From Basidiobolus meristosporus CBS 931.73 (taxonomy: Eukaryota; Fungi; Basidiobolomycota): a stretch of DNA of 64,000 nucleotides. Shown in pieces: positions 1 to 60,831 of the stretch (within the stretch, counting starts at the first letter, position 1; every line of letters starts with the position of its first letter). The stretch spans positions 1 to 64,000 of the forward strand of contig MCFE01000138.1 of NCBI GenBank assembly GCA_002104905.1, read 5' to 3'. The notes beneath the pieces were generated by a model. It was not told where the DNA came from. It saw nothing but the letters and a program-made list of their open reading frames with translations, and did not search any database. Position numbers and translations under genes: made by a program.

Positions 1-387
1 TGCTATCCATAGTAATCTATCCATAGTAGCATAAGAAAACAGATAAAGTGCCTAATTGAAGGTTGCTTCATACGGCTATAAGAGTCGGCGTGTGATTTTG
101 TCAAAAGTAGAAAGAACATTTCGTTCCAGCTCATTGTTACTCTTTACTCATATTCCTCGATCGAATTCTGCATGCATTCAGATAAGAAGAAAGAATCACT
201 AAGGCATTAAATTACGTTTAGAGGCCCTAGCCACGCACACTATTGCGTTAGATTGCACTCCAAGTAGCAAAAATCTATTCATGTGCATAGGCCAGTTATT
301 TTATAAGAGTGAATGCAAGCCTCGAATATGCGTACTCATCGGTTTTATTGTCAAGAATGTTAATGATGAAGTTGAATGGAGTATATT

Positions 388-421
388 GCATCCTCCGTAT
401 CCCCCATAGCGCCCATATCCC
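388..421 (-). pseudogene. Short relic of the Gly/Tyr-rich peptide C-terminus (GYGRYGGYGGC)
   Basis: Reverse complement reads GGA TAT GGG CGC TAT GGG GGA TAC GGA GGA TGC, matching the core end of the intact genes. No signal or pro-region is attached. Confidence 0.45.
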
Positions 422-778
422 AAAAACTATCAGAGCTTCTAGCTTTGTGCTAGCTCTAGTATACTGTTGTTAGTAAGATAAGGACAAGCATACTGATGAA
501 GTAAGCATGTGTGTTTCCACTAACGTGGCCGGTAAAAATGCTGCAAAAAAGAAACACTTCAATTGACTGCCAAACTGTTGATACCCACCTACACATCCAC
601 TACCACAACCTATCTAACTCGTTATCCCTACTGCAGCTTGAGGAACTATGAAAACTGCAGCTTGATGAATTATGCAAACATCACCGAGTGGCTTCTATTA
701 ATTACGATGAGGCTTAGTATGAAGTTTAGCATGAAACATTGACAATGTGATGTTTATTTAAGGTAAGGATGTGGTGAA

Positions 779-838
779 TTAGCAACCCCAGTGGCATCCA
801 CTGTAGCCTCCATAGCCACCATACCCCCAATGTAAGTG
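779..838 (-). pseudogene. 3' fragment of a type-B Gly/Tyr-rich prepropeptide gene (HLHWGYGGYGGYSGCHWGC*)
   Basis: The core end and TAA stop match the 3658 gene, and the downstream flank (~550-778) is homologous to 3490-3657. The 5' part of the gene is deleted. Confidence 0.7.
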
Positions 839-927
839 CTGGTGCATTTTGAAGGAGTTGAGCGGATTGTACATATTAGCCACATATTGAGGATACCGCT
901 ATTGATTGTGTGGACCATATTTTGACT

Positions 928-1010
928 CCAGTTGCAGCCATCTCCATGTCCCAATGTGCCCCAGAAACGTAGCGTCCTAATCTCCTTCCGTTGCTGCCAT
1001 AACTCCCTCC
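928..1010 (-). pseudogene. Ancient degenerate Gly/Tyr-core relic, module C copy 1 (others at ~4352-4432, 6175-6234, 11190-11270)
   Basis: Four homologous ~80-bp blocks. The minus strand gives GSYGSNGR..GRY and GDGCNW across a frameshift, resembling ..YGGCDW of the intact cores. Confidence 0.45.
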
Positions 1011-1449
1011 ACATCTTGAGGAATGGAATGATGATGGAGCTTGATAAACCTATCTAGTTACATCTAACTCCAGTATTTATTCCTAGCTGGTTACTCATGC
1101 CACAGCACGCCCTGAAGTATATATGGAGTCAGTGTATAGCTCAGCTGAACGATGGTATACGGAATATAAAGATTATCGTACTTCTGTACTTATACAATAT
1201 ATTCCCTTGTAGTGCATATAGTTCGTTTGATATTCGTATAAGCTGGTTCAAGTATTGAAGGATTCTTATCAAACAACGTCCATTTATTAAGTGATCATTT
1301 TTAGTTGTATAGTCTCATTTGTGAATATCTCCAATGAGTTGTAGCAAGCGTGTTCAAATATTAGGACATTGTAGAAAACATATACCACAAAGTCCACCAA
1401 CATGCTTTAGGCTACAAAGGTATCTATTGTGCGGACAGGAATAAGTTTA

Positions 1450-2200
1450 CCGACTTTATATTTTACCAGTAGAGCAAAAGCTCTGGAAAGCTCTTATATT
1501 CACTAAGCAATAGTCAACATAGCACCAACATACTGTATGAAGCAGAGTCTTATGTATATCCTATAGCTACCTGAAGTGGGAATACAAAGCAAGTCATGTG
1601 TTGGAATTTACTATGAGTACCAAGAAATAATGCTTGTTGCTTGGCTGATGTCATGTTTATGCTTAGTGAGCTGAATAGTGAAAGCATCTCCGAAAGACTG
1701 CTGGAGTACTGTACAAAGCCTGCCAATCTCTCAGTATATTGAGACTTCAGCCATACCTGTGAAGGAAGAGTTGGGAATAGCAGTAAGTGAGTATTTCTGC
1801 TGAGAATGACTACAATGAACCTTATGGTCTTCTATACACCAGAGATATGATGGTGTAAGTGTCAGTCAGTGATCAGAGTGTAAGTAATGATGTGATAGAT
1901 ACTTCATCATGAGTGTATTTATCTACCATAGCCGTCATGGTTAGATACACTCCACAAAGCTCAGATGGTCACAAGATCTTGTCCTGGTCAAAATCCGTGT
2001 TTTGAGGCAGACGATTTTGAACCAGAATCCTCGTATGAAAGGCTTATCTACGCATCAACGGGGCATCAACGGGGCATCAACGGGGCATCATCTTTCACCA
2101 CCACTATCAGTTATATGCCCAACGGTAAGACTATAGAGATGTCAATGAGTTATTTCACTCTACGAATATATGCATGCATTCAATCAAAGCAACTATGCCA
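1450..2200 (+). pseudogene. Decayed adenylation-domain (NRPS A-domain / AMP-binding) gene relic, module E copy 1
   Basis: Across copies the + frame gives KLLYEVESYAVQL..LPAVGVQSKSRVGIFYEYQEIMLVAWL (A1/A2-like), LNSRSLSER, LLYT..PKDMMV (A3 with the SGSTG loop deleted) and DGHKVLSWSKSVFEADVFE (A4-like). GTAAGT..TAG and GTAAGA..CAG intron-like segments are present, with stops and frameshifts. Confidence 0.5.
2052..2088. repeat. 11-bp tandem repeat GCATCAACGGG x3 plus partial
   Basis: Seen directly. The paralogous modules at ~5206 and ~12148 carry 2 and 1 exact units plus a variant. Confidence 0.85.
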
Positions 2201-2360
2201 TTTGTTTACGTATCGAAACCCAAGCCACACACACTATAACAAGTCATACACACGATAAAGTTGTATATTATTCCCCTTCATTATCTTAGTAACTCTGCAT
2301 ATCCCCTTATGGCTCTACACAATCTTCTTTAATATTCGATTCAACGGTGAAGTACTCACA

Positions 2361-2618
2361 ATACGACTCAATACCGTTCTCTCCTTCTTAAACATGGTAC
2401 TGCCAACCTGCGTATCAACCTTGGCTCCTGGCAACACGTGACTGCCGGGCCATTGGATACCGTAGGCATAACTCCCGGACCACCCGGCACCTCCGCCAAA
2501 GCAATCCTGTACCTTTCTCTGCAAGATTGCAACAAGAAAAGGATCAGGTTTGCTGCGATTACCTCGAAACTACGGAAAAGAAGTGACCGTTGGAGCAGTG
2601 AGAGTCTCTGCTAACTAG
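2361..2618 (+). pseudogene. Small secreted 2-Cys protein pseudogene (family D, copy 1)
   Basis: Homologous to the intact 9367-9777 gene. Start mutated to ATA, shared frameshift after the signal peptide, and a further 23-bp deletion. Confidence 0.75.
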
Positions 2619-2743
2619 CATTCTCAATAAGAGTCATAATCACATGGCCATTCACTATCAATAGATAAAATGCAACGATACTTTATTCAAGCACACAGAC
2701 AAGCTGTGTTGTTGGAGTGAATGAAAGCCTTGATTCTTATTAT

Positions 2744-3193
2744 TCAGCAACCCCAGTCGCATCCACCATACCCTCCATATCCCCCGTAGCGTCCATATCC
2801 CCACCGACCTCCATAACCACCGTAGCGACCGTAACGTCCTCGTCCCCAGTATCTGCCCCTCCGCCGCCCATATCCGCCGTATCTCCCCCATAGCTGGGCC
2901 TCTTCTGGATTGCCCTCCTCTTCCTCGACTCCTTGGTCGACGCCTTGCTTGCTCGAGATAGTCTGATCAAACGTATTCCTCGACATCTGGCCGAGAATGC
3001 CATCGATGTAGTGTCGAATATTCTGCGCATCCTCTTCCCTGTTGGACGAGAACTTCTTCACCGTTTGACCGCTTTGCGGGTTCTTATCGGAGATGGATGC
3101 GCTCGCTACATTTGTGCTTGACACATCTACGGGACTTCCAAAGGCACTGACGACCATTAGTAGAGCACAGGCTGCGGTAAGTTGTTTGTACAT
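2744..3193 (-). CDS. Secreted Gly/Tyr/Arg/Trp-rich prepropeptide type A, 149 aa (signal MYKQLTAACALLMVVSAFG, acidic pro-region, 48-aa core ending CDWGC)
   Basis: Uninterrupted ORF. The true ATG is at 3193 (the track start at 3214 is TTG). TATATAAA lies 40 nt upstream. Hydrophobic signal, then DQGVEEEEGNPEEAQL, then the WGRYGGYG... core. Confidence 0.9.
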   Translation of the reverse strand: MYKQLTAACALLMVVSAFGSPVDVSSTNVASASISDKNPQSGQTVKKFSSNREEDAQNIRHYIDGILGQMSRNTFDQTISSKQGVDQGVEEEEGNPEEAQLWGRYGGYGRRRGRYWGRGRYGRYGGYGGRWGYGRYGGYGGYGGCDWGC

Positions 3194-3232
3194 TGTGAAT
3201 GTTGAATACTCCAATAAAGCTCAGCACCAGCC

Positions 3233-3240
3233 TTTATATA
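3233..3240 (-). promoter_or_regulatory. TATA box (TATATAAA) of the type-A peptide gene
   Basis: 40 nt upstream of the ATG. Conserved at the same offset in paralogs (8313-8320, 13383-13390). Confidence 0.6.
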
Positions 3241-3423
3241 CAGATACAAGATCGAGGTTGATTGATATCGCATCTAGGAAGCTTCGCGGAATCGATGGGT
3301 TTCGGACGAACGATATATTATATTTTGCATCTATTCTACAGGCATTAGGAAGATACAATAAGAGCTTCTAGAGCAGTGTTATCATGCGAAAAAAAATGAC
3401 TACTAACAGTACACCATTAAAAA

Positions 3424-3493
3424 GTAAAAATTGACAGCATTGAAGGTAAAAATTGACCGCATTTAAAGGTAAAAATTGGCACCATTTATGAAG
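3424..3493. repeat. Three imperfect 22-25 bp repeats GTAAAAATTGAC(A/C)GCATT..AAG upstream of the intact type-A gene
   Basis: Seen directly. Only a single related AAAAATTGGC motif lies upstream of the pseudogenised paralogs (~8551, ~13738). Confidence 0.6.
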
Positions 3494-3657
3494 ATAATTG
3501 ACAGCCAAACTGCAATAAGACTTATCTTTACCTAGACATCCACCTTATCCATACACATATCCGACTTTCTCTCCATACTGCAGCTTGGTAAACATCACTG
3601 ATTAATTACGATGAGCATTGTCATTATGATGTTTATTAAACGTAAGGATGTAGTGCA

Positions 3658-4077
3658 TTAGCAACCCCAGTCGCATCCACCATAGCCACCATATCCCCCG
3701 TAGCGCCCATATCCCCATCGGCCTCCGTAGCCACCATAGCGACTGTAACGTCCTCGTCCCCAGTATCTGCTCCCCAACCTTCCATAGCCACCATATCTAC
3801 CCCAAAGCCCGGTCTCTTCAGAGTCAGTGTCTTCACTTGTAGGAGACACTTCTTCATCTGCCAACCCACTGCCTGACATTTGGCCGAATATGTCGTCAAG
3901 AATGGCGCGAGCATCTTCGTCTTTTGCGGATTGGAATTGTGTTATCATTTTGCCGCTTTGTGGGTCCCGGATGGAGATGGAAGCACTTGCTACATTGGTT
4001 ACTTCTGGCTGCACAGGAGTTGCCACTGCATATGAGGCAATTAGGAGAGCAAAGGGGATGGAGAAGTGCTTGTACAT
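3658..4077 (-). CDS. Secreted Gly/Tyr/Arg/Trp-rich prepropeptide type B, 139 aa
   Basis: Open ORF. Likely start is MYKHFSIPFALLIASYAVA (ATG 4077, aligns with the type-A start). Pro-region ends DEEVSPTSEDTDSEETGL, followed by a 48-aa core ending GGCDWGC. Confidence 0.88.
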   Translation of the reverse strand: MYKHFSIPFALLIASYAVATPVQPEVTNVASASISIRDPQSGKMITQFQSAKDEDARAILDDIFGQMSGSGLADEEVSPTSEDTDSEETGLWGRYGGYGRLGSRYWGRGRYSRYGGYGGRWGYGRYGGYGGYGGCDWGC

Positions 4078-4869
4078 TGTGAATCTGAATGAGCTGATTA
4101 TGAGTATATATACCCGCATAGCAGAAGCTGATGATGGAGCTTATTAGAGACACTCAACTTTACCTCTGCCTTCAGTGAGAAGCGCTGCGGGTGATCCATA
4201 CGATCGTTCAATAGAAACTGTTTAGTGGCTCTTCATTCAATCAAACACGCATACCACAACGAAAAGCTTCACAAGATCATTTGTTTAGCAGATATGTTGC
4301 AGGTTAGCAACATCCATATTAACCATATGTTGATATTGATTGTGTGAACTTCCAGTTGCAGCCATCTCCATGTACCAATGTATCCTGTCACTGTAGCGTC
4401 GTTACCCCCTTCCGTTGATGCCATAACTCCCTTTATATCATCATATTTACTAAAGAATGGCATGATTAATGACATCTCTTGAGCCAACTCAGGTATTTCT
4501 TCCCAGTCGGTTACACATACAGTTAACCTACCGCAGTAAATCCTGAAGAATATACTTGGTCGGTGTATGGTAAGCGGAATTAGTAAGCTCCAAGTTAGGC
4601 TGCGATAATATAAAAATTAGTGTACTTATCGAATAGATTCTCAGTGCATATAGCTTGTTGTAAGTTCATGCTAGCTGATATTGGAAGGGGCTGCGGTTCA
4701 AGCACTGAGAACTAGCTGCGATCATTATTACTAAATGACAACCATTGATAGCCTCAAGCATTCCATTTTCATTCTTAGTTGTACAGTATCTGTTGCAAAT
4801 ATCTTCAAATATTGGGATATTGTGGAGAATATAGGGTACTTGATATTGTGGAGAATATAGGGTACTTGA

Positions 4870-5345
4870 TATTTAGTGAAGGAAGAACTGCTCATAGCAG
4901 TGAGTGCTGAGGTCAGAGTATTTCTGCTGAGAATACTGAGGAGATAATGGTTCTGTGAAAATGACTACGACAAACCTTGTGATCTTCTATACACCAAAGA
5001 TATGATGGTGTAGGTGTCAGTCAGTGATCAGAGTGTAAGTAATGATGTGATAGATACTCCAGCATGAGTGTATTTATCTACCATAGCCGTCATGGTTAGA
5101 TACACTCCACAAAGCTCAGATGGTCACAAGGTCTTGTCCTGGTCAAAATCCGTGTTTGAGGCAGACGTATTTGAATCAGAATCCTCGTATGAAAGGCTTA
5201 TCTACGCATCAACGGGGCATCAACGGGGCATCAACTGGGCATCATCTTTCACCACCACTATCAGTCATATGCCCAACGGTAAGACTATAGAGATTTCAAT
5301 GAGTTATTTCACTCTACGATTATATGCATGCATTCAATCAGGTTT
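4870..5345 (+). pseudogene. Adenylation-domain relic, module E copy 2
   Basis: Homologous to 1760-2200. Contains LLYT-PK(D)MMV and VLSWSKSVFEADVFE, and an intron-like segment 5279-5341 (GTAAGA..CAG). Confidence 0.45.
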
Positions 5346-5588
5346 GCGCTTATAGCAACTATGACGTTTTGAAGTCTTTCTATGTTACTAGTAGCAAGGA
5401 ACGGGCTCTCTTGGCTAGAAACTGAAGTAATCATATGCGTACTCCCAAGACTGAAAAAAGTACTCTAATAGAATACTCCCCTTCATTGTCATGGTAATTC
5501 TGCCTGTCTCTCCTTGCCAACAGTGCCTATCTCCTTATAGCTCTATACAATCGTATTTAATATTCGATTTAACGGTAAAACACACACA

Positions 5589-5831
5589 GTGCGATTCAAT
5601 ACCGTTCTCTGCTCCTTAACCGTGGCACTGCTAACCCGCGTATCAAACTCGGCTCATGCCAACACGTGACCTGCAGACCGGTAGATACCGCAAGCATCAC
5701 TTCCGGACCATCCAGCACCTCCGCCAAAGCAATAATGTACCCTTCTCTGTAAGATTGCAACAGGAAAAGGAACAGGATTGTTGCGAGTACCTCCAAATAA
5801 CCGAAAAGAAGTAGGGGTCTCTGCTAACTAG
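5589..5831 (+). pseudogene. Family D secreted-protein pseudogene, copy 2
   Basis: GTG replaces ATG, shared frameshift, in-frame TAA (CAA>TAA) and 3' deletions. Confidence 0.75.
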
Positions 5832-5990
5832 CATTCACGACAAGAGTTATAAAGAATACATCCCATCGAATTATACTCAGGGCCATTCACTATCGATAGA
5901 CAAAATGCGACAGTACTTTATTCAAGCACACAAAAAAGCTGCGTTGCTGGAGTGAACGAAAGCCTTGACTCTTATTAGTAAGGAGTTTAT

Positions 5991-6242
5991 TCAGCAACCC
6001 CAGTCGCATCCACCATAGCCTCCATATTCCCACAGACCTCCATAACCACCGTAACGACCGTAACGTCCTCGTCCCCAGTATCTGCCCCTCCACGGCCCAT
6101 ACCCGCCGTATCTCCCCCATAGCTCGGCCTCTTCAGGATTGCCCTCCTCTTCCTCGACTCCTTGGTCGGCATTCGCCATCTCCATGTACCAATGTATCCT
6201 ATCACCGTATCCCCTTCCGTTGCTGCCACAACTCATATTCAT
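5991..6242 (-). pseudogene. 5'-deleted type-A gene fused in frame to the module C relic (83-aa ATG ORF, no signal peptide)
   Basis: The C-terminal part is ADQGVEEEEGNPEEAELWGRY...CDWGC. The N-terminal MNMSCGSNGRGYGDRIHWYMEM derives from module C. Junction at ~6170-6175. Confidence 0.75.
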
Positions 6243-6949
6243 TAAAGAGTGGCACGGTTGATTAAAACATCTCTTGATCCGATCTAGCTACATCCAACTC
6301 CAGTGTTTATTCCTAGTCGGTTACGCATACAGTCAACCTGCCGCAATACATCCTCAAGTATAGGTCAGCTGAACGAGGAATAAATAAGCTTAAAGTTAGG
6401 ATGCTATAATATAGAAATTAGTATACTTCTGTACTTATCTAACAGTGCTTATAGCTCGCTTGTAAGTAAGTTCATTGTAGGTAATATTGGCAGGGATTGC
6501 GGCTCAAATAATGATAGCTGCCTCAAGTATTCGGGCTACTACTTTTTCATTCTTAGTTATATAGTGCCTGTTGTAAATATCTCAAATATTAAAGCATTGT
6601 GAAGAATGTTTGGCACTTGATATGGTACCTGAAGCTGATAGTGCAATACTGGTTCAGAAGTGTCCAGTAAACCAAGGGTTCTGGTGATATTTAAATGAGG
6701 AAAGCAGAGGCCTATTGCACCTGGGCAGCCTGTAAGTAACTTTCAATCATCAATTACATAAAGAACTGCTCACCAAGGAGTCAATGTAAGTTCAAAATCC
6801 CTACTGCAGGCTAACTCCACTACAAAGTCTGCTCACTCCAATAGCCAACAGTATGGATCAAGGAGCTATCAGCACCATTCTATATGCTACAAGGTTATTT
6901 ATTGCGAAAATATGAGTTGGAATGCTGCCTAGAACAAGTTTACTGAGCT

Positions 6950-7400
6950 TATGTTTTACCAGTAGCTTTAGAGCAATGGAGAGTTCCTACTCTTGCTTAT
7001 CAGTGTTCAAAATAACACCAAATTACTATACGAAGTAGAGTCCTATGCAGTACAATTGTATATCTGGTAGCTACCTGCAGTGGGAGTACAAAGCAAGTCA
7101 CGTGTTGGTATTTTCTACGAGTACCAAGAAATAATGATTAAACATGGCCTATTTATGCTAGTGTGCTGTAATCAGCTAAACAGTAGGAGCCTCTCTGAAA
7201 GACAGCTGGAGCGCCGTACAAAGCCTGCATCACCTATGCCAGCATGCCAATGTCTTAGTATATTGAGACTTTAGCCATACCTGTGAAGGAAACTGTTCAT
7301 AACAGCAAGTGCTGAGGCCGCTGCACTGCTGTTGAGAATACTGAAGAGATAATAATATTTTGGGTATGACTACAATGAACCTTATGATCGTCTATATAAG
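6950..7400 (+). pseudogene. Adenylation-domain relic, module E copy 3 (5' part)
   Basis: + frame ISVQNNTKLLYEVESYAVQLYIW*LPAVGVQSKSRVGIFYEYQEIMI...QLNSRSLSERQLE resembles the A-domain pattern LTYxEL..A.QL..L...GV...SRVGI..E...EMI...PLD...PAER. Confidence 0.5.
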
Positions 7401-7465
7401 TATCAGTCAGTAATAACTTGGCAAGTAGAATGCTGCCAGCTTGATGTGATAAATAAACCCTAGCC

Positions 7466-7733
7466 CCGTTCTCTACTCCTTAACCGTGGCACTGCTAACC
7501 AGCGTGTCAACATCAGCTCATGTCAACACGTGACCTGCAAACCGGTAGATACCACAAGCATCACTTCCGGTCCACCCAGCACCTCCGCCAAAGTAATCCT
7601 GTACCCTTCCCTGCAAGATTGCAACTGTAAAAGGAACAGGACTGCTACAATTACCTCTAAACAATTCGAGATACACATCGCGAAGTACGGAAAAGAAGTG
7701 ACCGTTGGAGCAGTGAGAGTCTCTGCCAACTAG
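7466..7733 (+). pseudogene. Family D secreted-protein pseudogene, copy 3 (5'-truncated)
   Basis: Lacks the first codons and has the shared frameshift. The mature-domain frame is open (TCKPVDTTSITSGPPSTSAKVILYPSLQDC...VRVSAN*). Confidence 0.75.
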
Positions 7734-7858
7734 CATTCTCAATAAGAGTCATAATCACATGGCCATTTACTATCGATAGATACAATGCAACGGTACTTTA
7801 TTCAAGCACATAGGCAAGTTGTGTTGTTGGAGTGGATGAAAGCCTTGATTCTTATTAT

Positions 7859-8273
7859 TTAGCAACCCCAGTCGCATCCACCATACCCTCCATATCCCCA
7901 TCGACCTCCATAACCACCGTAGCGACCGTAGTGTCCTCGTCCCCAGGATCTGCCCCTCCGCCGCCCATATCCACCGTATCTCCCCCATAGCTGGGCCTCT
8001 TCTGGATTGCCCTCCTCTTCCTCGACATCTTGGTCGGCGTCTTGCTTATCCGAGAGGGTCTGATCGAACGTATTTCTTGACATCTGGCCGAGAATGCCAT
8101 CGATGTAGTGTCGAATATTCTGCGCATCCTCCTCCTTGTTGGACGAGAACCTCTTCACCACTTGGCCACTTTGTGGATCCCTATCGGAGATTTGTGCTTG
8201 ACACATCCACGGGACTTCCAAAGGCATTGACGGCCATTAGTAGAGCACAAGCTGCGGTAAGTTGTTTGTACAT
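7859..8273 (-). pseudogene. Type-A prepropeptide pseudogene (17-bp deletion)
   Basis: ATG at 8273. Loss of TGGATGCGCTCGCTACA relative to 3108-3130 shifts the frame (MYKQ...SSTNLR*). The downstream pro-region and a 42-aa core are still recognisable. Confidence 0.85.
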
Positions 8274-8641
8274 TGTGAATGTTGAATACTCAAATAAAGC
8301 TCAGCACCAGTCTTTATATACACATACAAGATGGAGGTTGATTGATATCGCATCTAGGAAGCTTCAGTCAAATGATGTAGTATATTTCGGAGGCAACCAC
8401 CGCAGCCAAAGTACAAACACTCGATTTCTGTTAACAACAACACTAGTCGTGGTATAGAGATTTCTATACTATGTTATATGAAAGTGGCAAGTGTTTATCT
8501 CGTAAACGGAAATGGGTAGATAAACAGCGAGAGCCTCAAAAGAGAGCCTCAAAAATTGGCATTTATTTTGCATGATTTAGAGTTGTGGATGATCGCAATA
8601 TTAGTAGTAAGCTTAACAGCATGATGTATTAAATTAGCAGC

Positions 8642-8824
8642 TCAAGCAAACCCTCCAAGTTCCCAGCGACCATCATAGTCCCCGAAGTGACCATAACGAC
8701 CTCGTCACCTGCCCTCTCTGGTGCGAGCACCTTCTTCCTACACACCGTTTCCCGACTTTGGAGAAGAGATGGACACACTTGTCACATTAAAAAGTATTAG
8801 AGCGATGGAAAAGTACTTGCGCAT
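8642..8824 (-). pseudogene. Highly deleted type-B-like relic (MRKYFSIAL..NVTSVSISSPKSG..RGRYGHFGDYDGRW)
   Basis: Pieces of the signal, pro-region and core are colinear with type B, with two in-frame stops. Confidence 0.6.
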
Positions 8825-9366
8825 GGTGAACACCAAAGAATAAACGGAGCCTCCCCTCGTGTATATTTTACGTTATCAATCCCATACTGGTCATCTTTTT
8901 CTTTGGCCACCACCATTTGCCGTTCTTCACCAGAAGTCATCACCACCATCTGATTCCTTCATCAGGAGATGAATGAGTGGGCTACAAATGGGCAATGCCT
9001 ATATACTAAGCATGCACTCAAAATTTAAAGCCTCAGTGTAACAGAAACTACAACACTTTATTTACGCCTAGATCGCACTCACCATATTCGGCGTTACGAT
9101 ACTAATGGAAGCGAGCAGGCAACGCATCCATGCCACATATGCAGGCTAACACTAGTCATCGAACAATACAAGGATCATCACTTGAGTTCGATGGTTTCTC
9201 CTTTAAAAAAAGTGCTTAGCCCAAAGCGAATTTGGTGAATAATAAAGAATATTCCGCTTCATCATGGTAGCTCAGCCTGTCTCTCCTTACAAGCCGGGCT
9301 AATTTCCTATAAAATCGCTTGTAATGTTCACCTTATTCATCAGGCATACACACAGAGGCACACACA

Positions 9367-9777
9367 ATGCGATTCAGTACCGTTTTCTGCTCCTTGACCA
9401 TGGCACTACTAGCCGGCACGACAACTTCAGCACAATCCTCTAGTGCGTTACTAACTATGTATCAGTATATAACCCAACTAGCCGCAACCAGTGAGCCTTA
9501 CTAACCAAATACTTACAATGTAGAGTTGGTGAATACTCCTGAAGATACTGCACAACAACTACCATTCTCGGCTGGCTCATGCCAACGTGTGACCTACTCC
9601 AGCATCACCCCTGAATCTCCCAGTACCTCTGCTCAAGCCGTCCTGTATCCTTCTCTGCAAGATTGTTACAATCGCAGGAACAGGATAGCTGCTATAACAT
9701 CCAAACAACTCGAGGTGCCTATCGCGAAGAACGGAAAAGAAGTGACTGTTGGAGCAGTAAGAGTATCTGTCAGCTAG
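9367..9777 (+). CDS. Intact spliced small secreted 2-Cys protein (family D), 109 aa
   Basis: Exon 1 9367-9442 (MRFSTVFCSLTMALLAGTTTSAQSS, a signal peptide). Intron 9443-9523 (GTGCGT..TACTAAC..TAG, 81 nt, contains an in-frame stop). Exon 2 9524-9777 is in frame (KLVNTPEDTAQQLPFSAGSCQRVT..AVLYPSLQDCYNRRNR..VTVGAVRVSVS*). TATAAAA at 9308-9314. About 13 synonymous third-position changes versus copy 3. Confidence 0.75.
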
Positions 9778-10112
9778 CATCCTCAATAAACCGCATTGTT
9801 TAGCCAGGAGTGATAAAGAATGCATCCCATTAGATATACACAGCCAGAATGAAAGAGCAACTGTAACAGACTAGTGAACGAAAGCCTAGAATATGCCTAC
9901 ACATCATTCTGAGCAAAAGATCAATGGAGTGTATCCACCGTGGCGATACTAGTAGCAAGGAACGGGCTCTCTTAGCTAGAAACTGAAGTAAGGGTGATGC
10001 TCCCCTTCATTGTTATGGTAGCTCTGCCTGTCTCTCCTTGCCAACCGTGCTTATCTCCTTATAGCTCTATACAGTCCTCTTCAGTATTCGATTCAACGGT
10101 GAAACACACACA

Positions 10113-10385
10113 ATGCGATACAAAACCGTTCTCTGCTCCTTAACCGTGGCACTGCTAACCTGCATACCAGCCTCGGCTCATGCCAACACGTGACCGGTAG
10201 ATACCGCAAGCATCACTTCCGGACCGCCCAACACCTTCGCCAAAGCGATCCCGTACCCTTCTCTGCAAGATTGCAACAGGAAAAGGAACAGGATTGCTAC
10301 GATTACCTCCAAACAACCCGAGACACACATCGCGATGAACGGAAAAGAAGTGACCTTTGGAGCAGTGAGGGTCTCTGCCAGCTAG
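10113..10385 (+). pseudogene. Family D pseudogene, copy 4
   Basis: ATG and signal MRYKTVLCSLTVALLTCIPASA are intact, then the shared frameshift gives HANT*. Confidence 0.75.
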
Positions 10386-10510
10386 CACTCTAAATAAGAG
10401 TCATAATCACATGGCCATTCACTATCGATAGATACAATGCAACGGTACTTTATTCAAGCACACAGACAAGTGGTGTTGTTGGAGTGAATGAAAGCCTTGA
10501 TTCTTATTAT

Positions 10511-10930
10511 TCAGCAACCCCAGTCGCATCCGCCATACCCTCCATATCCCCCGTAGCGTCCATACCCCCACCGACCTCCATAACCACCGTAGCGACCGTA
10601 ACGTCCTCGTCCCCAGTACCTGCCCCTCCGCCGCCCATATCCACCGTATCTCCCCCATAGGTCGGTCTCTTCAGAGTCAGTGTCTTCACTTGTAGGAGAT
10701 AGTTGTTCATCTGCCAACCCACCGCCTGACATTTGGCCGAATATGTCGTCAAGAAGGGCACGAGCATCTTCGTCTTTTGTGGATTGGAATTGTGTTATCA
10801 TTTTGCCGCTTTGTGGGTCCCGGATGGAGATGGAAGCACTTGCTACATTGGTTACTTCTGGATGCACAGGAATTGTCACTGCATATGAGGCAAGTAGGAG
10901 AGCAAAGGTGATGGAGAAGTGCTTGTACAT
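10511..10930 (-). CDS. Chimeric prepropeptide: type-B signal/pro-region plus type-A core, 139 aa
   Basis: Open ORF from ATG 10930. The 5' part is nearly identical to the 4077 gene. The 48-aa core is identical in amino acids to the 2744 gene, and the 3' flank is type A. Confidence 0.88.
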   Translation of the reverse strand: MYKHFSITFALLLASYAVTIPVHPEVTNVASASISIRDPQSGKMITQFQSTKDEDARALLDDIFGQMSGGGLADEQLSPTSEDTDSEETDLWGRYGGYGRRRGRYWGRGRYGRYGGYGGRWGYGRYGGYGGYGGCDWGC

Positions 10931-11759
10931 TGTGAATCTGAATGAAGCACTTGAGCCGATTATGAATATATATACCCGCACAGCAGAAGCTGATTAAAGA
11001 CACTCAACTTCACCTCTGCCTTCAGTGGGAAGCGCTGCGGGTGATCCATATGGTCGTTCAATAGAAGCTGTTTAGTGGCTCTTCATTCAATCAAACACGC
11101 ATAACACAACTCAAAGCTTAAAAAGATCATTTGTTTAGCAGATATGTTGATATTGATTGTGTGAACCGAGTGTTGACGAGTCTGTACCTCCAGTTGCAGC
11201 CATCTCCCTGTACCAATATATCCTGTCACTGTAGCGTCGTTATCCCCTTCCTTTGCTGTCATAACTCCCCTTACATCGTCCTATTTACTAAAGAACGGCA
11301 TGGTTGATGACATCTCTTGAGCCAACTCCATTATTTAATCATAGTCGGTTATGCATACAGTCAACCTGCCGCAGTACATCCTGAAGTATATACTTATTTG
11401 GTGTATAGCTCAGCTTAACGGTGGTTCAGTAAGCTCCAAGTTAGGCTGCGACAATATAATAATTAGTGTACTTATCTAATATATTCTCAGTGCATACAGC
11501 TTGTTGTAAGTTCATGCTAGCTGATATTGGAAGGGGTTGCGGTCCAAGTATTGTCATTGTTACTAAATGACAACCATTTATTGTCTCAAGTATTCCATTT
11601 TCATTCTTAGTTGCAAATATCTCAAATGAGCTCTTCAAATATCGGGATATTGTGGAGAATATACGATAATTGATATGGCACCTGAATGCTACTAGTACGA
11701 CACTGATTTAGAAGCGAGCCAAGGTTCTGGTGGGGTCTAAAATGAAGAAAGTAGAGGCC

Positions 11760-12280
11760 TACCGCACTTAACCATGGAGAACTGTACAAAGCATGCATCA
11801 CCTATACCAGCATGTCAATATCACAGTCTATTGAGACTTTAGTGAAGGAAGAACTGTTCATAGCAGTGAGTGCTGAGGTCAGAGTATTTCTGCTGAGAAT
11901 GACTACAATGAACCTTATGGTCTTCTATACACCACAGATATGATGGTCTAAGTGTCAGTCAGTGATCAGAGTGTAAGTAATAACTTGACTAGTAGCTTGA
12001 TGCGGTAGATACTCTAACATGAGTGTATTTATCTACCATAGCCATCATTGTTATTGAACAAACGCTCAAAAGATACACTCCACAAAGCTGAAAAATCTCA
12101 AAAATCCGTGTTTTGAATCAGAATCCTCGTATGAAAGGCTTATCTACGCATCAACGGGGCATCAACTGGGCATCATCTTTCACCACCACTATCAGTCATA
12201 TGCCTAACGGTAAGACTATAGAGATTCCAATGAGTCATTTCACTCTACGAATATATGCATGCATTTAATCAGCTTTTGCA
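11760..12280 (+). pseudogene. Adenylation-domain relic, module E copy 4
   Basis: Homologous to copies 1 and 2 (AENDYNEPYGLLYT.., ESSYERLIYAS..), with additional indels. Confidence 0.45.
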
Positions 12281-12589
12281 CTTGTAGCAACTATGTCATT
12301 TGTTTACGTATAGAAACCCAAGCCACACACACTATAACAAGTCATACACACGATAAAATTGTAGTGATTCAAGTCTTTTTATGTTACTAGTAGCAAGAAA
12401 TGGGCTCTCTTGGCTAGAAACTGAAGTAAGAATGATGGATTAGCATCATATGCGCACTCCCAAGACTGAAAAAAGTACTCTAATAGAATATTCCCCTTCA
12501 CTGCCTGTCTCTCCTTGCCAACCGGGCTTATCCCCTTATAGCTCTATACAATCGTATTTAATATTCGATTTGACGGTAAAACACACACA

Positions 12590-12824
12590 GTGCGATTCAA
12601 TACCGTTCTCTGCTCCTTAACCGTGGCATTGCTAACCCGCGTATCAACCTCGGCTCATGCTAACACGTGACCGGTAGATACCGCAAGCATCACTTTTGGA
12701 CCATCCAGCACCTCCGCCAAAGCAATCATGTACCCTTCTCTGTAAGACTGCAACAGGAAAAGGAACAGGATTGTTGCGACTGCTTCCAAATAACGGAAAA
12801 GAAGTAGGCGTCTCCGCCAAGTAG
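12590..12824 (+). pseudogene. Family D pseudogene, copy 5
   Basis: GTG start, shared frameshift, CAA>TAA stop and 3' deletion, as in copy 2. Confidence 0.75.
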
Positions 12825-12928
12825 CATTTACAATAAGAGTTATACATATGACCATTCACTATCGATAGATAAAATGCGACAGTACTTTATTCGTTGCTGG
12901 AGTGAATGAAAGCCTTGACTCTTATTAT

Positions 12929-13343
12929 TCAGCAACCCCAGTCGCATCCACCATAGCCTCCATATTCCTACCGACCTCTATAACCACCGTAGCGACCGTA
13001 ACGTCCTCGTCCCCAGTATCTGCCCCTCCACCGCCCATACCCGCCGTATCTCCCCCATAGCTGGGCCTCTTCAGGATTGCCCTCCTCTTCCTCGACTCCT
13101 TGGTCGGCTTCTTGCTTATCCGAGAGTGTCTGATCGAACGTATTCCTTGACATCTGGCCGAGAATGCCATCGATGTAGTGTCGAATATTCTGCGCATCCT
13201 CTTCCCTGTTGGACGAGAACTTCTTCACCACTTGGCCGCTTTGTGGATCCCTATCGGAGATTTGTGCTTGACACATCCACGGGACTTCCAAAGGCACTGA
13301 CGGCCATTAGTAGAGCACGAGCTGCGGTAAGTTGTTTGTACAT
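12929..13343 (-). pseudogene. Type-A prepropeptide pseudogene (17-bp deletion plus TGG>TAG nonsense in the core)
   Basis: Same 17-bp deletion as the 7859 copy. The core reads ...YRGR*EYGGYGGCDWGC*. Confidence 0.85.
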
Positions 13344-15000: not shown

Positions 15001-15240
15001 CAAGTCAAGCAAAGAGATCCCTATATTGAGTCAAGTCAAGCAAAGAGATCCCTATATTAAATCAAGTCGAGCAAAGAGATCCCTATATTAAATCAAGTCA
15101 AGGAAAGAGATCCCTATATTGAGTCAAGTCAAGCAAAGAGATCCCTATATTAAATCAAGTCGAGCAAAGAGATCCCTATATTAAATCAAGTCAAGGAAAG
15201 AGATCCCTATATTAAATCAAGTCGAGCAAAGAGATTTCTA
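15001..15240. repeat. 31-bp minisatellite, ~7.7 copies (CAAGTC(A/G)AG(C/G)AAAGAGATCCCTATATT(G/A)A(G/A)T)
   Basis: Contiguous near-perfect units with no spacers. Variants recur with a ~3-unit (93 bp) period. Confidence 0.95.
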
Positions 15241-15728: not shown

Positions 15729-16890
15729 TTAGCGTCCATATCGCATATTTGAAATCACTTCGGCCACTCTTGGATGCGCCCGCAGCTCAGTAATTGATGG
15801 TCTGTGACAAGGCTACAAGGATCTATTAATTGGCTAATCTTGTATTGTCTCTGTGCGGTTGCGTACCTGTTGTTGTAGTAAACAAATAATCAGATCCAAC
15901 GCTTCCTTTCCATAAATGCTGGGAATATTAACGGCTAAATCGCCACATATTGATTGCTCCAGATGGAACTGTGTGGGAAGCTCAAAGAGAGTCTCCAGCG
16001 TGCATAACTCATATAAAAGTAACCCTAGTGCCCATATGTCAACCTTTTCACTATAAGGTTGTTTACGAAGCAGCTCCTAAACAAACTGTGAGTACACAAG
16101 TGATGAGACAGCATAACATCAACTTACGGGCGCCATGTAGTACGGTGACTGTAATATTGCGTTAGTACAATGCCCTAGTCCACACTACACATTCACATAC
16201 CCCAGCAAAGGTTTTGGCTGCTCCACCAGCATCAACTATTCGCTTAATACCAAAGTCACCAAGCTTGATGGATTCTGTACCGGTGATAAATACTTTTACC
16301 ATGCATATTTGTATTAGTCAATGCTATAGTAAAACCCTCACTTTACACTTACTATTCTCTGGTTTGATGTCGCGATGGATGAGGATGGCACCATTCTGCT
16401 GTCCATACTCAACATGACACCAATGAACCGCACAAACAACCTGCGCAAATATGCTCCACACCTGGCTTGGCTGTAGAGAACATCTGGTGTGCTTATTGAG
16501 ATTTGAATTCTGGATGATCATTTAAAGAAAGTACCTGTGTGTTTTGCAAAGCTGTAGTACATTTCGCAAGTCCCCATATGCGCAGTATTCCATTACAATG
16601 AAGACTTTGCCATTGTTTTGAGCGGCCCAGAAGTCTTCAACTGCCACTAGATTAGGATGTTGCACATTGTGAAGTATTTGCGCCTCCTCCATGGCATCTC
16701 GAATCCCAGCCAAACTGTGATACTGCAGCTTTACTTCTTTCATAGCAAACAACTAAACAAACCTTGTTAGTACGGTTACGCCTTCTTACGCTCGCATTAC
16801 CTTCTGGTCACTCAGACGGACAACCTTCCACACAGTGCCAAAACCTCCTTCACCTAGGCACTCCAGTCGTGTGTAATTGTCAATGCTCAT
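15729..16890 (-). CDS. NIMA/NEK-like Ser/Thr protein kinase, 7 exons, 281 aa, kinase domain only
   Basis: Exons 16890-16801, 16752-16535, 16483-16353, 16292-16201, 16148-16128, 16076-15867 and 15812-15729 splice in frame. Introns are 48-60 nt GT..AG, two with TACTAAC. Motifs LGEGGFG, FAMKEV, IVMEYC, HRDIKPEN, KLGDFG, TFAGSPYYMAPE, EKVDIWALG, HRPS..L..HP are intact. Confidence 0.88.
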
Positions 16891-17028: not shown

Positions 17029-18246
17029 TCAGGCATTGCCAATCCAGTACTGGGTATGGTATGGATGGAAGAGCTCATGGCTACTAAACTTGGCATATGC
17101 GTTGGGCTCATTTACCGGCTGAAAGGTGTCACGAAAGCCTGGATTCTTGATCAAAAGTTGGTACAGCATCTGCAAACCACCGGCCTTCATTCTGGCAAGG
17201 CTATTTGCTGTCAAGATGCCAGGAAAGTTCAGAATATTTGCCCCAAGGTAGTTTGTGATCATGAACAATGGTGCTGACCTATCAAGTACCTGTTTGAAGC
17301 GGCTGTAATTAAAGCTGGGATTATGCGCCAGTAGCTTACTATGCAAAGCTTTGAATATTTGGTTTGCTTGTCCTTTAGGTGTTTTTGCACCAGCTGCACC
17401 GCTTTGTAAAACCTGTTGGGCAAAGCATACAAAGCAATGATAGAGGTTGTAGTAGTACGTATTGCTGCGCACTTGCACCTCGTTGTCAATGCTGGCTAGT
17501 TGTTGAAGATTGTTTCCCAGATTCAACATTGCCTGAATGGGATCTTCTGGCCTATCACTGATATGGTACCTTTGTGCTTGTTTGCATTGAGCCATCAAGC
17601 TGATATCCACAATAGGTGTGCGACAATCCTGTTTTTGGCTTCCTTTGTTGATCTCCATACAGAGGTCTTCAATAAATTGAATCACACGATGATACTCATG
17701 GTTGAGTACACTGCCATCTGCCTCTGCTTTGCTGGTAGTCACCCAGTTGCGCAACCACTCTGGTAGGGTATTCATTCCTTTGGTTGTATTGTCACCATCT
17801 TGCACACAAGGCAATATGCTGCTACTAGGGGCCGGGGATACGCTGCTAGGGACTACGCTGCTACTCGGGACTGGGGATATTTGCATTGCGTCAGTCAAGG
17901 CTGGGAGCACTGGTGTAGGTGGCATCTCAGCCTGGGGGGGTTGCTTAGTTCTTGCCTTCTTCTTACGCTTAGCTGCAACTTTATCATTGGTAAAGGCACT
18001 ACGCATTTCCTCCTTTGAAATATCACTTAGAAATCCGGTTTGGCACTTATAACATATATCTCCATGACTCCACACCTCAATGGTGTCATCAATATGCTGA
18101 AAGCCCCGTACTCCCAGGTGCTTGAATACTCCACCTAGTACTGCCAGCACCCGGAATGCAACCTCTCCATTTGAAATCTCTGTTGCCAAAGAAGCCGCTT
18201 TGCCAACAGCACTAGAGGCAACAGACCAAGTGAGTAATGTCTCCAT
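17029..18246 (-). CDS. Intronless 405-aa hypothetical protein (basic KRKKKAR stretch, Pro/Ser linker, helical C-terminal domain)
   Basis: Long open ATG ORF with protein-like composition and retained CpGs. No family recognised. Confidence 0.65.
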   Translation of the reverse strand: METLLTWSVASSAVGKAASLATEISNGEVAFRVLAVLGGVFKHLGVRGFQHIDDTIEVWSHGDICYKCQTGFLSDISKEEMRSAFTNDKVAAKRKKKARTKQPPQAEMPPTPVLPALTDAMQISPVPSSSVVPSSVSPAPSSSILPCVQDGDNTTKGMNTLPEWLRNWVTTSKAEADGSVLNHEYHRVIQFIEDLCMEINKGSQKQDCRTPIVDISLMAQCKQAQRYHISDRPEDPIQAMLNLGNNLQQLASIDNEVQVRSNTYYYNLYHCFVCFAQQVLQSGAAGAKTPKGQANQIFKALHSKLLAHNPSFNYSRFKQVLDRSAPLFMITNYLGANILNFPGILTANSLARMKAGGLQMLYQLLIKNPGFRDTFQPVNEPNAYAKFSSHELFHPYHTQYWIGNA

Positions 18247-24039: not shown

Positions 24040-24970
24040 TTATTAACCTAGAGATCTTGAACTGGAACTCAGGTTGAAGCCAAGAGTTTTTTGACCTGGG
24101 ACATAGATCCATATCATAGGGTGTTACAACTGAAATTCAGGTTGAAATAATTCATTTGTAAACAACTGTATTGGGTTATTTGATAGATATGTTTACCTGG
24201 AAGTTATATTCATGTGAGGGATTAGATTTCATGGTGCACAGGTTACTATAAAATCTTCTCACAGTTGATGCATAGCATAATCTGAGAAACTTATTAACCT
24301 GAGCCAGAAACAGATATCATAGATTTGTCAGCTCAGAAAGTATCATCCTGTGGATCTCCTAATCAGGGTCTAGACTGATCCAGTGAAGTTGCCAATATTG
24401 TATTAACCTGGAACCCAGGTTCATGTAAAAGAGTTGTTATTCTGTAAACAGCTTTATTCCACAGAGTTATTAGTCTAGGACTCAGCATTAGACCTTATGC
24501 TTGTTTTTCTGGGATTTTGGTTTATACCATAGAGTGCAGACCTTAGACCCAGGTTTGTACCATAGAGTATTCAGCCTGCAATGTAGAATTATGCCATGGT
24601 AAGGTAAACCAGAACCCAGTGTATACCATAAGGTTTTTATTCTGCAACTGGCTGTGTTCTACAGTATTGTTTGCTGTAGTCTTGCTGGCCTGGCCTCCAA
24701 ATTTTTGCTATGGTCTTGTTGACCTGGCCTCCAGGTTTATATTATGGTCTAGTGAACCTGGCCTCCAGGCTTATGCTAAAGTCATGTTAACCTGGCCTCT
24801 GGGCTTATGTTACAGTGTTGCTAACCTGGTCTTGCAACTTAGGCTATAGTCCTGTTAACCTGGGCTCCAGGTGTATAATATGGTTTTGACAATTGGGTCC
24901 CCAGGGTCATGCAATGGTCTTATTGACCTGGGCTCCAGGTTTATGCAATAGTCTTGTTGACCTAGCCTCC
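24040..24970. repeat. 34-bp satellite, block 1 (older, diverged)
   Basis: Recurrent AACCTGG..CCAGG units, clearest from ~24680. Confidence 0.65.
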
Positions 24971-24974
24971 AGGC

Positions 24975-25305
24975 TTACACCTTGTTCTTCCCTGTGAAAA
25001 ATCAGAAACTTGGAATACATAAGATCTTCAGCCAGTATTCTGCTAGTGTCATGATGGTATGTTGCTGATATTCAGCTTGAGTTTTTTGTTCAAATTTTCA
25101 ACTGCAATTTTTGTTGGAAGTAGAGGGCAGCTAATGACCAATATTGGTGTGAATGCTAGTTGACCTATCCATTTGATAAAAGTGTCTGCTTGTCTCCCCA
25201 ACTACTAGAACCTGACCAACTAAAAGTTGTCAGTTTTGAGAAACTTAGAATTCAGCAGATATTATGATGGTATTCTACTGGTCTTTCTTAATTCTATTTC
25301 TTAGG
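24975..25305. repeat. ~330-bp non-satellite module, copy 1 (copy 2 at ~27425-27745)
   Basis: Colinear similarity between the two modules (AAACTTGGAAT..GATCTTCAG..GATGGTAT..GCTGATATTCAGCT..CTAATGACCA..GTGTCTGCTTG..TTCAGCAG). Confidence 0.75.
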
Positions 25306-27420: not shown

Positions 27421-27745
27421 TATTGGAATTCCTTAAAAAAATCTTAAACTTGGAATTCATGTGATCTTCAGTGTCTATACTGCTTGTAACCTGATGGTAT
27501 TTTGCTGATATTCAGCTGGTATTTTTGGTTCAGATTCTTGTCTGTAATCTTTGATGGATGTAGTGGGTGGCTAATGACCAAATTTGGTATGAATGATAGT
27601 TGACCTAGTATCCTCCTGGAAAATGTGTCTGCTTGCCTCCCCAGTAATTAGAACTTGCTCTGCTGAGGCTTTTCAGTTTTGAAAACCAGATATTCAGCAG
27701 TAAATATGAATGTATGCTGCTTGTTATTGCTTGATTTTTTGTAAG

Positions 27746-54668: not shown

Positions 54669-54880
54669 CACTAACTTGCTAAATAGTTCTGATTGCGTTG
54701 GTTTAGGTGCCTTCTAGTAGCTTGTAGCTGTAATCAGGGTGTTTACATAAACAACCAGGGGATTACTCTCTTTGAGACTTGCTTTCTATATATATATGTA
54801 GAGTAACTTGTAATACTAGATTTAAGCCCAATATCTTCCAATTCAATGTTGATCAAATTATTCCACACACTGGGTGTCTG

Positions 54881-60463: not shown

Positions 60464-60831
60464 TGTTATGATCTATTGCTTGAATGTTTAAGTTAGATAA
60501 GTATTTACCTAAGTCAAATAGCTTTATTTTTAGCCTATCAGTACATCAGCGTTATCTAACAAATCAGTAGTATTAGTAGCAGATGAGTCAGCAAATCCCT
60601 ATCAGACAGTAATGGTTATACTAAGTAGGATCTGATTGGGTGATGATGATACAAACAAATGAGCCATCAGCCACAGCCTACCTTAGGAAATACGATTATT
60701 TAGCAACTGATCTGGCAAAATGTATTGAAGGAGCTGCTGGAACCACAATAAAAATCAGTTCAAGTTTTAGTGAATGCAATACTAGCTACACTCCCTATTC
60801 CTCTACAACTTTTATATCAAGACTTATAACA
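60464..60831 (+). mobile_element. Solo LTR (368 bp) of the Ty3 family with CACT TSD, inserted in the copia RNase H
   Basis: TGTTATGATC..TTATAACA is colinear with the young LTR but diverged. CACT at 60460-60463 and 60832-60835. Confidence 0.9.

Follow-up and report, generated by a model that had tools for sequence, protein, structure and literature searches.

A Peptide Gene Array at the Start of Contig MCFE01000138.1

The first 64 kb of contig MCFE01000138.1 from the frog-gut fungus Basidiobolus meristosporus CBS 931.73 (hereafter the window) opens with an array of genes for small, secreted-looking precursors that end in a Gly/Arg/aromatic tail. A listing of open reading frames (ORFs) and a tblastn search of the three intact proteins against the window located three intact genes, three long broken copies, and three scraps, all on the minus strand (Table 1). 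The original prediction had named these three genes and at least six direct relics; the genes were found as ORFs where it had placed them and match models of the Joint Genome Institute (JGI), and the relics were recovered as well. Two types, A and B, were distinguished, and the recurring unit pairs a type B gene with a type A gene that lies 464 bp downstream of it (window 4077 to 2744); loci L001, L002, and L007 contain the same pairing. A degenerate DNA pattern for GYGGCDWGC followed by a stop codon gave 6 matches in the window and 0 in 100 shuffles. The array forms a patchwork of segments with 65–95% identity, and similarity over at least 200 bp is confined to the first 14 kb of the window. 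It reaches the contig start, and the genomic array may extend past the assembly.

The broken type A copies that end at 8273 and 13343 have in common both a 17-bp deletion after codon 28 and a 6-codon deletion in the core, and the 17-bp lesion accounts for many JGI models starting with MCQAQISD. These copies are broken relative to the secreted form, with one common lesion. Their mutual ratio of nonsynonymous to synonymous substitution rates (dN/dS) is 0.23 rather than approximately 1, which indicates that they diverged mostly under constraint or that the lesion was spread by gene conversion; the idea that they are plain copies of an already dead gene was hence dropped. A TATATAAA box lying 40–47 nt upstream of the ATG is kept in the aligned type A copies, and TATATA occupies its position in the type B copies; a function for the box is putative. 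A scan with bacterial-type promoter and terminator models, which are not meant for fungal DNA, gave no result.

Table 1. Peptide genes, their relics, and the accompanying partner gene. Positions refer to the window unless a locus is named.
Feature	Position	Strand	Remarks
Type A gene, 149 aa	2744–3193	−	Intact; JGI model; protein 99% identical to P0001
Type A signal peptide, codons 1–19	3137–3193	−	
Type A leader, codons 20–101	2891–3136	−	
Type A core, 48 aa	2747–2890	−	
Type A stop codon	2744–2746	−	
TATATAAA box	3233–3240	−	Putative upstream element
Type B gene, 139 aa	3658–4077	−	Intact; JGI model; 464 bp upstream of the type A gene
Type B signal peptide	4021–4077	−	
Type B leader	3805–4020	−	
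Type B core	3661–3804	−	Net charge +7
Chimeric gene, 139 aa	10511–10930	−	Intact; JGI model; type B signal and leader, type A core and 3' flank
5'-truncated copy	5991–6242	−	No signal peptide; acidic tail and junction kept; core 42 aa (6 shorter); JGI model of 62 aa at 5991–6179
Broken type A copy	7859–8273	−	Frameshift from the 17-bp deletion; core 6 aa shorter; 122-aa ORF without signal, from an internal ATG, still open (the JGI model)
Broken type A copy	12929–13343	−	Same 17-bp deletion; in-frame TAG in core; 6-aa core deletion; protein P0012 encoded at 12925–13276
Decayed core scrap	782–934	−	GCHWGC-like end; contains a stop
Core scrap, 36 nt	385–420	−	Near the contig start
Short decayed core scrap	8648–8704	−	
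Partner gene, two exons	9400–9777	+	Small secreted-looking 2-Cys protein; tail-to-tail with the chimeric gene; not annotated in the contig
Decayed partner-gene copy	2422–2618	+	In the 3' flank of the type A gene
Decayed partner-gene copies	5651–5801; 7516–7733; 10175–10385; 12652–12794		
Partner-gene copy, locus L006	8427–8820	−	JGI model, 107 aa
Partner-gene copy, locus L007	2695–3088	−	JGI model, 107 aa

Precursor Architecture

Each intact precursor consists of an N-terminal hydrophobic signal-like segment, a leader, a junction, and a C-terminal tail built almost entirely of Gly, Arg, and aromatic residues. The signal peptides, called by eye and from a helix in the AlphaFold2 model, have a short basic or polar start, a hydrophobic core of 11–13 residues, and small residues at −3/−1 (AFG, AVA, AYG). 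The leader combines a conserved N-x-A-x-A-S-x-S motif with one predicted helix and an acidic block, and its last 15–18 residues before the junction contain 7–8 Asp/Glu. The junction itself, EE(A/T)xL|WGR, contains no dibasic site, and CDWGC forms the C-terminus. All of these elements (signal, motif, acidic block, EE-x-x-L-W-G-R, and tail) are present in 3 of the 3 intact genes of the window. The 48-residue type A core is composed of 21 Gly, 10 Arg, 10 Tyr, 4 Trp, 2 Cys, and 1 Asp (44% Gly and 21% Tyr) and carries a net charge of +9, and that of type B carries +7. These counts, including the acidic residues ahead of the junction, agreed exactly on recount with those given in the original prediction, and its description of a junction free of a KR/RR Kex2 site was borne out.

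A Sister Family with a Trp/Arg Tail

Two further B. meristosporus proteins, P0017 and P0019, were matched in an exhaustive HMMER search via the stretch around the junction and led to a third type, C. Locus L005 (MCFE01000402.1, 8900–20200) holds a tandem array of about 10 type C copies spaced approximately 1.2 kb apart, 6 of which are intact full-length ORFs and several of which were merged or missed by annotation, and locus L004 (MCFE01001163.1, 1–3700) holds 3 copies. Several copies in these two arrays are broken or fused into JGI models of 394–436 aa. The type C precursor has a signal peptide ending in LAYG, followed by the N-x-A-x-A-S-x-S motif, a helix, an acidic block, and the junction (D/N)PEEAELWGR; in L005, it also has a Lys/His-rich insert of KKHH-type units whose length varies between neighbouring copies. 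Its tail is a (WGRGR)n repeat of 33–38 aa with a charge of +13 to +15, containing 24% Trp and 39% Arg and neither Cys nor Tyr. Protein searches found no type C relatives outside B. meristosporus.

When 31 members of types A, B, and C were aligned, E97, E98, L101, G103, and R104 were invariant in 31 of 31, at an overall identity falling to 29–41%. Profiles built from the leaders only align over the signal peptide and the NVASASIS motif (hhalign E 1e-4, probability 57%). The start of the L004-type tail (WGRFGGRRRWGRGRW) aligns with the start of the type A tail, which suggests that the A/B and C tails are probably homologous, with Tyr exchanged for Trp. Types A, B, and C hence probably form one superfamily, which may be described as the Basidiobolus EExxLWGR prepropeptides. 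As far as sequence comparison can tell, the Cys tail is not essential to this wider family, because the (WGRGR)n sister type is without it; the CxxxC end that had been put forward as a family feature thus holds for types A and B and fails for type C.

Charge Balance and Predicted Structure

The leader and tail charges roughly cancel. The cores range from +7 to +15 and the leaders from −4 to −16, and the more cationic type C cores are paired with about twice as many acidic residues. Most of the whole secreted proteins fall between −4 and +2, and some type C genes with a long Lys/His insert reach +8 to +11. The earlier idea that an acidic pro-piece neutralises the core therefore stands as to the opposite signs, but the cancellation is only approximate.

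For type A, AlphaFold2 run on the 31-sequence alignment gave a mean predicted local distance difference test score (pLDDT) of 48, with a signal helix, one helix at residues 52–80, and a disordered tail whose core stays below 50; the type C leader was mostly disordered (pLDDT approximately 48). Matches at such quality are meaningless, and a fold search on the models was ruled out. A Gly-X-X polyproline-II fold of the antifreeze kind was also rejected, since the period of the tail is 3 in one subtype and 5 in another and AlphaFold2 yielded no such bundle.

Size and Species Range of the Family

Among 5.8 billion clustered proteins, a word-seeded search picked out 13 clusters, all from B. meristosporus. 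The exhaustive HMMER profile search, made over 1.84 billion representatives, returned 15 proteins at E ≤ 1e-3, of which 11 are from the same species and the other 4 are unnamed low-complexity analogues (E 1e-4 to 1e-3) in metagenome, transcriptome, and sequencing-run assemblies. Two borderline analogues, P0018 and P0021, lie on eukaryotic metagenome contigs; they were rejected as family members and are analogies only. On a eukaryotic contig in JGI metagenome 3300008122 (Ga0114359_1010128, positions 1–3500; locus L009), adjoining genes encode a signal, an acidic stretch, and Gly/Tyr/Arg repeats, for example YGRPWGYGG units, with a GK end, and represent a convergent analogue of the Basidiobolus design. 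Within B. meristosporus, two clusters at 90% identity, one of type A with 28 distinct sequences and one of type B with 11, are spread over at least 11 contigs, and the members listed are mostly full-length. The genome contains dozens of gene copies, and the proposal of an amplified fungal family with a signal, an acidic leader, and a cationic Gly/Tyr/Arg/Trp tail proved correct.

Searches of Pfam, NCBIfam, and PDB sequences gave nothing significant for the family. At E ≤ 0.1, Pfam produced two insignificant matches, DUF6550 and HsbA (13.6 bits each), and no match to GRP (PF07172). Two members bear the UniRef label "RSAM-associated Gly-rich repeat protein", which was rejected as a compositional auto-label because the corresponding model gave no match in an NCBIfam scan at E ≤ 1 of P0035, P0039, and the window genes. 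Two metagenome DNA scans, one for the tail pattern and one for the junction pattern, had no matches, and literature on Basidiobolus glycine-rich proteins, antimicrobial peptides, secretome, and transcriptome yielded no description of the family. The failure to recognise any named fungal family in the original prediction was therefore upheld by these searches, which also brought up no described cell-wall glycine-rich family, an outcome that had been named as one that would overturn it. The A/B/C family, its junction motif, its occurrence in a fungus, and its paired Tyr and Trp versions appear to be undescribed in the sources searched; the general design of a signal, an anionic pro-piece, and a cationic low-complexity peptide encoded in tandem arrays is already known.

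Selection on Leader and Tail, and Exchange at the Junction

Substitution rates were evaluated by the Nei–Gojobori method for 14 intact A/B genes from six loci. Between A and B, the core gave a dS of 0.51, a dN of 0.029, and a dN/dS of 0.056, whereas the leader gave a saturated dS, a dN of 0.43, and a dN/dS of about 0.15, in keeping with the earlier observation of differing pro-regions joined to nearly identical cores. Within type A, dS, dN, and dN/dS were 0.082, 0.005, and 0.06 for the core and 0.187, 0.046, and 0.25 for the leader. The six type C genes behaved similarly, with a dN/dS of 0.02 for the tail (dS 0.23) and 0.27 for the leader. In the A/B as in the C family, constraint is strongest on the tail, whose low dN/dS indicates that its conservation is more than a product of recent duplication. 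Between types A and B, the lower dS of the core points to exchange as well. The leader of the chimeric gene at 10511–10930 has a dS of 0–0.075 to the gene at 3658, and its core has a dS of 0.12 to the gene at 2744 and 0.76 to the gene at 3658; a site-by-site map places the crossover within approximately 2 codons of the EE-T-x-L-W junction. As judged from these patterns, the near-identity of the cores is attributable to strong purifying selection together with recombination at the junction, and not only to recent duplication, and leader and tail behave as exchangeable modules.

Partner Gene and Other Features of the Window

The partner gene listed in Table 1 is apparently intact, has a signal-like start and no Pfam match, and encodes a protein that shares 90% identity with the L006 and L007 models. 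A decayed copy of it lies on the opposite strand in the 3' flank of every peptide gene but that at 3658–4077. A repeated array segment (1795–2265, 4951–5369, and 11809–12363) contains a plus-strand ORF of 95–97 aa without a Pfam match and is probably non-coding array filler. The first non-repeat genes past the array are an intronless 405-aa ORF (17029–18246, minus strand), a JGI model with no Pfam match, and, next to it, a protein kinase gene (15729–16890, minus strand). Further into the window, two full-length Ty3/gypsy retrotransposons at 41908–46846 (minus) and 49731–54676 (plus) are inverted and 99% mutually identical, and each has an intact gag-pol ORF of 1377 aa. The 369-bp long terminal repeats (LTRs) of the former match each other at 100% identity, as expected if the element inserted very recently. 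At 60464–60832 there is a solo LTR (87%), and at approximately 55264–56573 a decayed related pol. A diverged 34-bp satellite occupies about 5.7 kb at 24672–30372 (approximately 150 units, 63% matches) with a strong AT skew and, in places, a 135-bp higher-order period, and a 31-bp tandem repeat at 15001–15235 has 7.6 copies with 92% matches.

Comparison with Known Systems

One likeness noted in the original prediction was to the NLP-29/31 and caenacin (CNC) peptides of C. elegans, which are also made as small secreted precursors from tandem clusters and give cationic Gly/Tyr-rich products with YGG-type repeats (PMC2453101). No homology was detected, as HMMER over the 1.84 billion representatives gave, besides B. 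meristosporus proteins, only compositional borderline matches. The Basidiobolus precursors have a long acidic leader with EExxL|WGR and end in CDWGC, whereas the nematode precursors have dibasic sites and end in a Gly-Lys amidation signal; moreover, the tail is under purifying rather than positive selection, and the organism is a fungus rather than an animal. Mussel Mfp-3, also named at the outset, is a cationic, disordered protein of approximately 45–50 aa rich in Gly, Tyr, Arg, and Trp, with many variants from a gene family. By its description, it resembles the Basidiobolus cores in size, composition, charge, and multi-variant family, but it has no comparable acidic leader and relies on DOPA and hydroxyarginine modification. 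Both likenesses hold for composition and do not extend to membership.

Defensin-type propeptides balance a cationic mature peptide with an anionic pro-piece in one precursor; the Basidiobolus family differs in having no cysteine-stabilised fold, another processing motif, and an approximate balance only. In composition, the type C tail is like the Trp/Arg-rich antimicrobial peptides (PMC6017362), such as indolicidin, tritrpticin, and synthetic (RW)n, but it is a longer, Gly-spaced repeat from a fungal precursor. The known natural peptides of this kind are 13–25 aa long and come from vertebrate cathelicidin or milk-protein precursors. The tick protein GRP77 (UniProt Q4PME3) shares the signal peptide, the disorder, and the division into an acidic N-terminal and an Arg/aromatic/Gly C-terminal portion. 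It is, however, less extreme (charges of −3.4 and +2.5, 9% aromatic, 26% Gly), has neither the conserved junction motif nor the Cys tail, acts uncut, and shows no sequence relation. Plant class II glycine-rich proteins (PF07172) also combine a signal peptide with a Gly/Tyr-rich body and with Cys close to the C-terminal end, but lack the acidic leader and the junction. A precursor of a ribosomally synthesised and post-translationally modified peptide of the fungal ustiloxin/dikaritin type was rejected, because each precursor has a single tail and no KR-flanked (Kex2) repeats; no DUF3328/UstYa or other Pfam-bearing enzyme gene adjoins the arrays in the 8 loci read.

Proposed Function and Rival Explanations

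The junction is invariant at the acidic/cationic boundary across divergent families, which is most simply explained by a processing recognition site and thus favours a prepropeptide model. The best reading, to which we give a rough probability of 0.45, is that cleavage of the precursor at the junction would free a disordered, cationic peptide with antimicrobial activity. The protein would enter the secretory pathway, in which the acidic leader may keep the cationic tail soluble and harmless, until a candidate endoprotease not of the Kex2 type cuts at or beside L|W. The product would be a peptide of 48 aa, or of 33–38 aa in the WGRGR type. Extracellularly, this peptide may be an antimicrobial that works on membranes or walls and is directed at the bacteria and fungi that crowd the amphibian gut and dung. 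In types A and B, the terminal C-D-W-G-C could form a small disulfide loop shielding the end from carboxypeptidases. Gly/Tyr-rich secreted peptides of C. elegans are established antifungal effectors (PMC2453101), Trp/Arg-rich peptides are a recognised antimicrobial class (PMC6017362), and the host niche of Basidiobolus is bacteria-rich (PMC10964425). By analogy, the Trp/Arg composition of the type C tail favours an antimicrobial role.

Several points weigh against this antimicrobial prepropeptide. We know of no protease for an EExxL|W site, and the junction could serve another purpose; the signal peptide call itself comes from inspection by eye and the AlphaFold2 helix. Cleavage by a kexin at an internal RRR of type A could make the real product shorter, and neutralisation is not strict in those type C genes whose Lys/His-rich insert leaves the protein at +8 to +11. 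Conservation of the mature part alongside a variable leader is the reverse of the diversifying selection that arms-race peptides commonly show and that has been reported for the nlp-29 cluster (PMC2453101). Furthermore, the high Tyr content and the layout of an acidic N-terminus with a cationic, aromatic C-terminus would, by analogy, fit a coacervating adhesive equally well.

Such a material is the main rival, which we regard as possible but rather unlikely: the protein, secreted cut or uncut, would inhibit itself, with the Arg/aromatic/Gly tail driving cation–π and π–π coacervation and the acidic leader delaying it until release. It could serve as glue on the capilliconidial beak or as a hyphal or spore coat, with the Cys tail linking one molecule to another. 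Support comes from experiments on a protein of the same layout, the tick cement protein GRP77, in which phase separation is driven by the Arg/aromatic C-terminus and delayed by the acidic N-terminus (10.1101/2023.03.27.534361), and the capilliconidia of Basidiobolaceae have an adhesive-covered beak (PMC13370150). The Basidiobolus core consists of stickers (Tyr, Trp, Arg) and spacers (Gly) and is predicted to be disordered; between subtypes, the aromatic residue swaps (Tyr in A/B, Trp in C) with Gly and Arg kept, which suggests a composition-driven function, and strong conservation at very high copy number suits a bulk material. A simple polyampholyte, however, needs no invariant junction motif, the type C tail resembles a polycationic antimicrobial more than a glue, and no tyrosinase or other cross-linking enzyme adjoins any of the 8 loci. 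Gly/Tyr-rich eggshell and cuticle proteins are the analogue for a structural wall protein of zygospores or conidia hardened by dityrosine or DOPA cross-links. The Tyr and Gly content of the core, the predicted secretion signal, the copy number, and the thick two-layered walls of Basidiobolaceae resting spores (PMC13370150) agree with this, but type C has no Tyr at all and still has the leader, junction, and selection pattern in common; with no GPI signal, no wall-anchoring repeat, and no match to the Pfam glycine-rich or any other wall family, we consider it improbable.

A signal or effector directed at a host or partner, such as the amphibian gut epithelium or arthropod carriers, has about as little to recommend it. 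The family is lineage-specific, small, secreted, and amplified in an animal-associated fungus, with a conserved small secreted partner gene lying tail-to-tail, but its mature part is nearly invariant where effector families usually diversify, and a low-complexity tail of +9 to +15 is atypical of receptor ligands. Finally, the family could be an amplified orphan ORF without function that multiplied as a passenger when its repeat-rich locus underwent segmental duplication: amplification or homogenisation took in broken as well as intact copies, two of the broken ones have a 17-bp deletion in common, the array is a mosaic, and the rest of the window contains young retrotransposons and a satellite. 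This explanation is very hard to reconcile with a tail dN/dS of 0.02–0.06 at dS 0.2–0.5, with the 28 and 11 distinct, mostly full-length sequences among those listed in the two clusters, and with a junction kept between families that are otherwise 30–40% identical.

Implications

Taking the antimicrobial prepropeptide further, we tentatively suggest that Basidiobolus may have evolved its own class of cationic ribosomal peptides, in which one precursor design (signal, motif, acidic block, and a protease-cut EExxL|WGR) would carry interchangeable Gly/Arg/aromatic warheads. These would be a Tyr-rich 48-mer with a disulfide-looped end and a natural (WGRGR)n "RW peptide". If this is true, they would be the first known fungal Gly/Tyr-rich and Trp/Arg-repeat antimicrobials, convergent with nematode and vertebrate ones, and the acidic leader would have the second role of holding back toxicity or condensation from within the precursor. 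Most of the ribosomal antimicrobial peptides known from fungi have cysteine-stabilised folds, for example of the defensin-like and AFP/PAF types; disordered Gly/Arg/aromatic peptides with a distinct processing motif would add a class new to fungi and would be a clear case of convergence with animal peptides. The Tyr-for-Trp swap between the sister families provides a natural experiment on the "sticker" rules for membrane activity and phase separation, and the cores are short enough for direct synthesis and assay. For the fungus itself, the family may help a gut inhabitant compete with bacteria, or may help its spores stick to their carriers.

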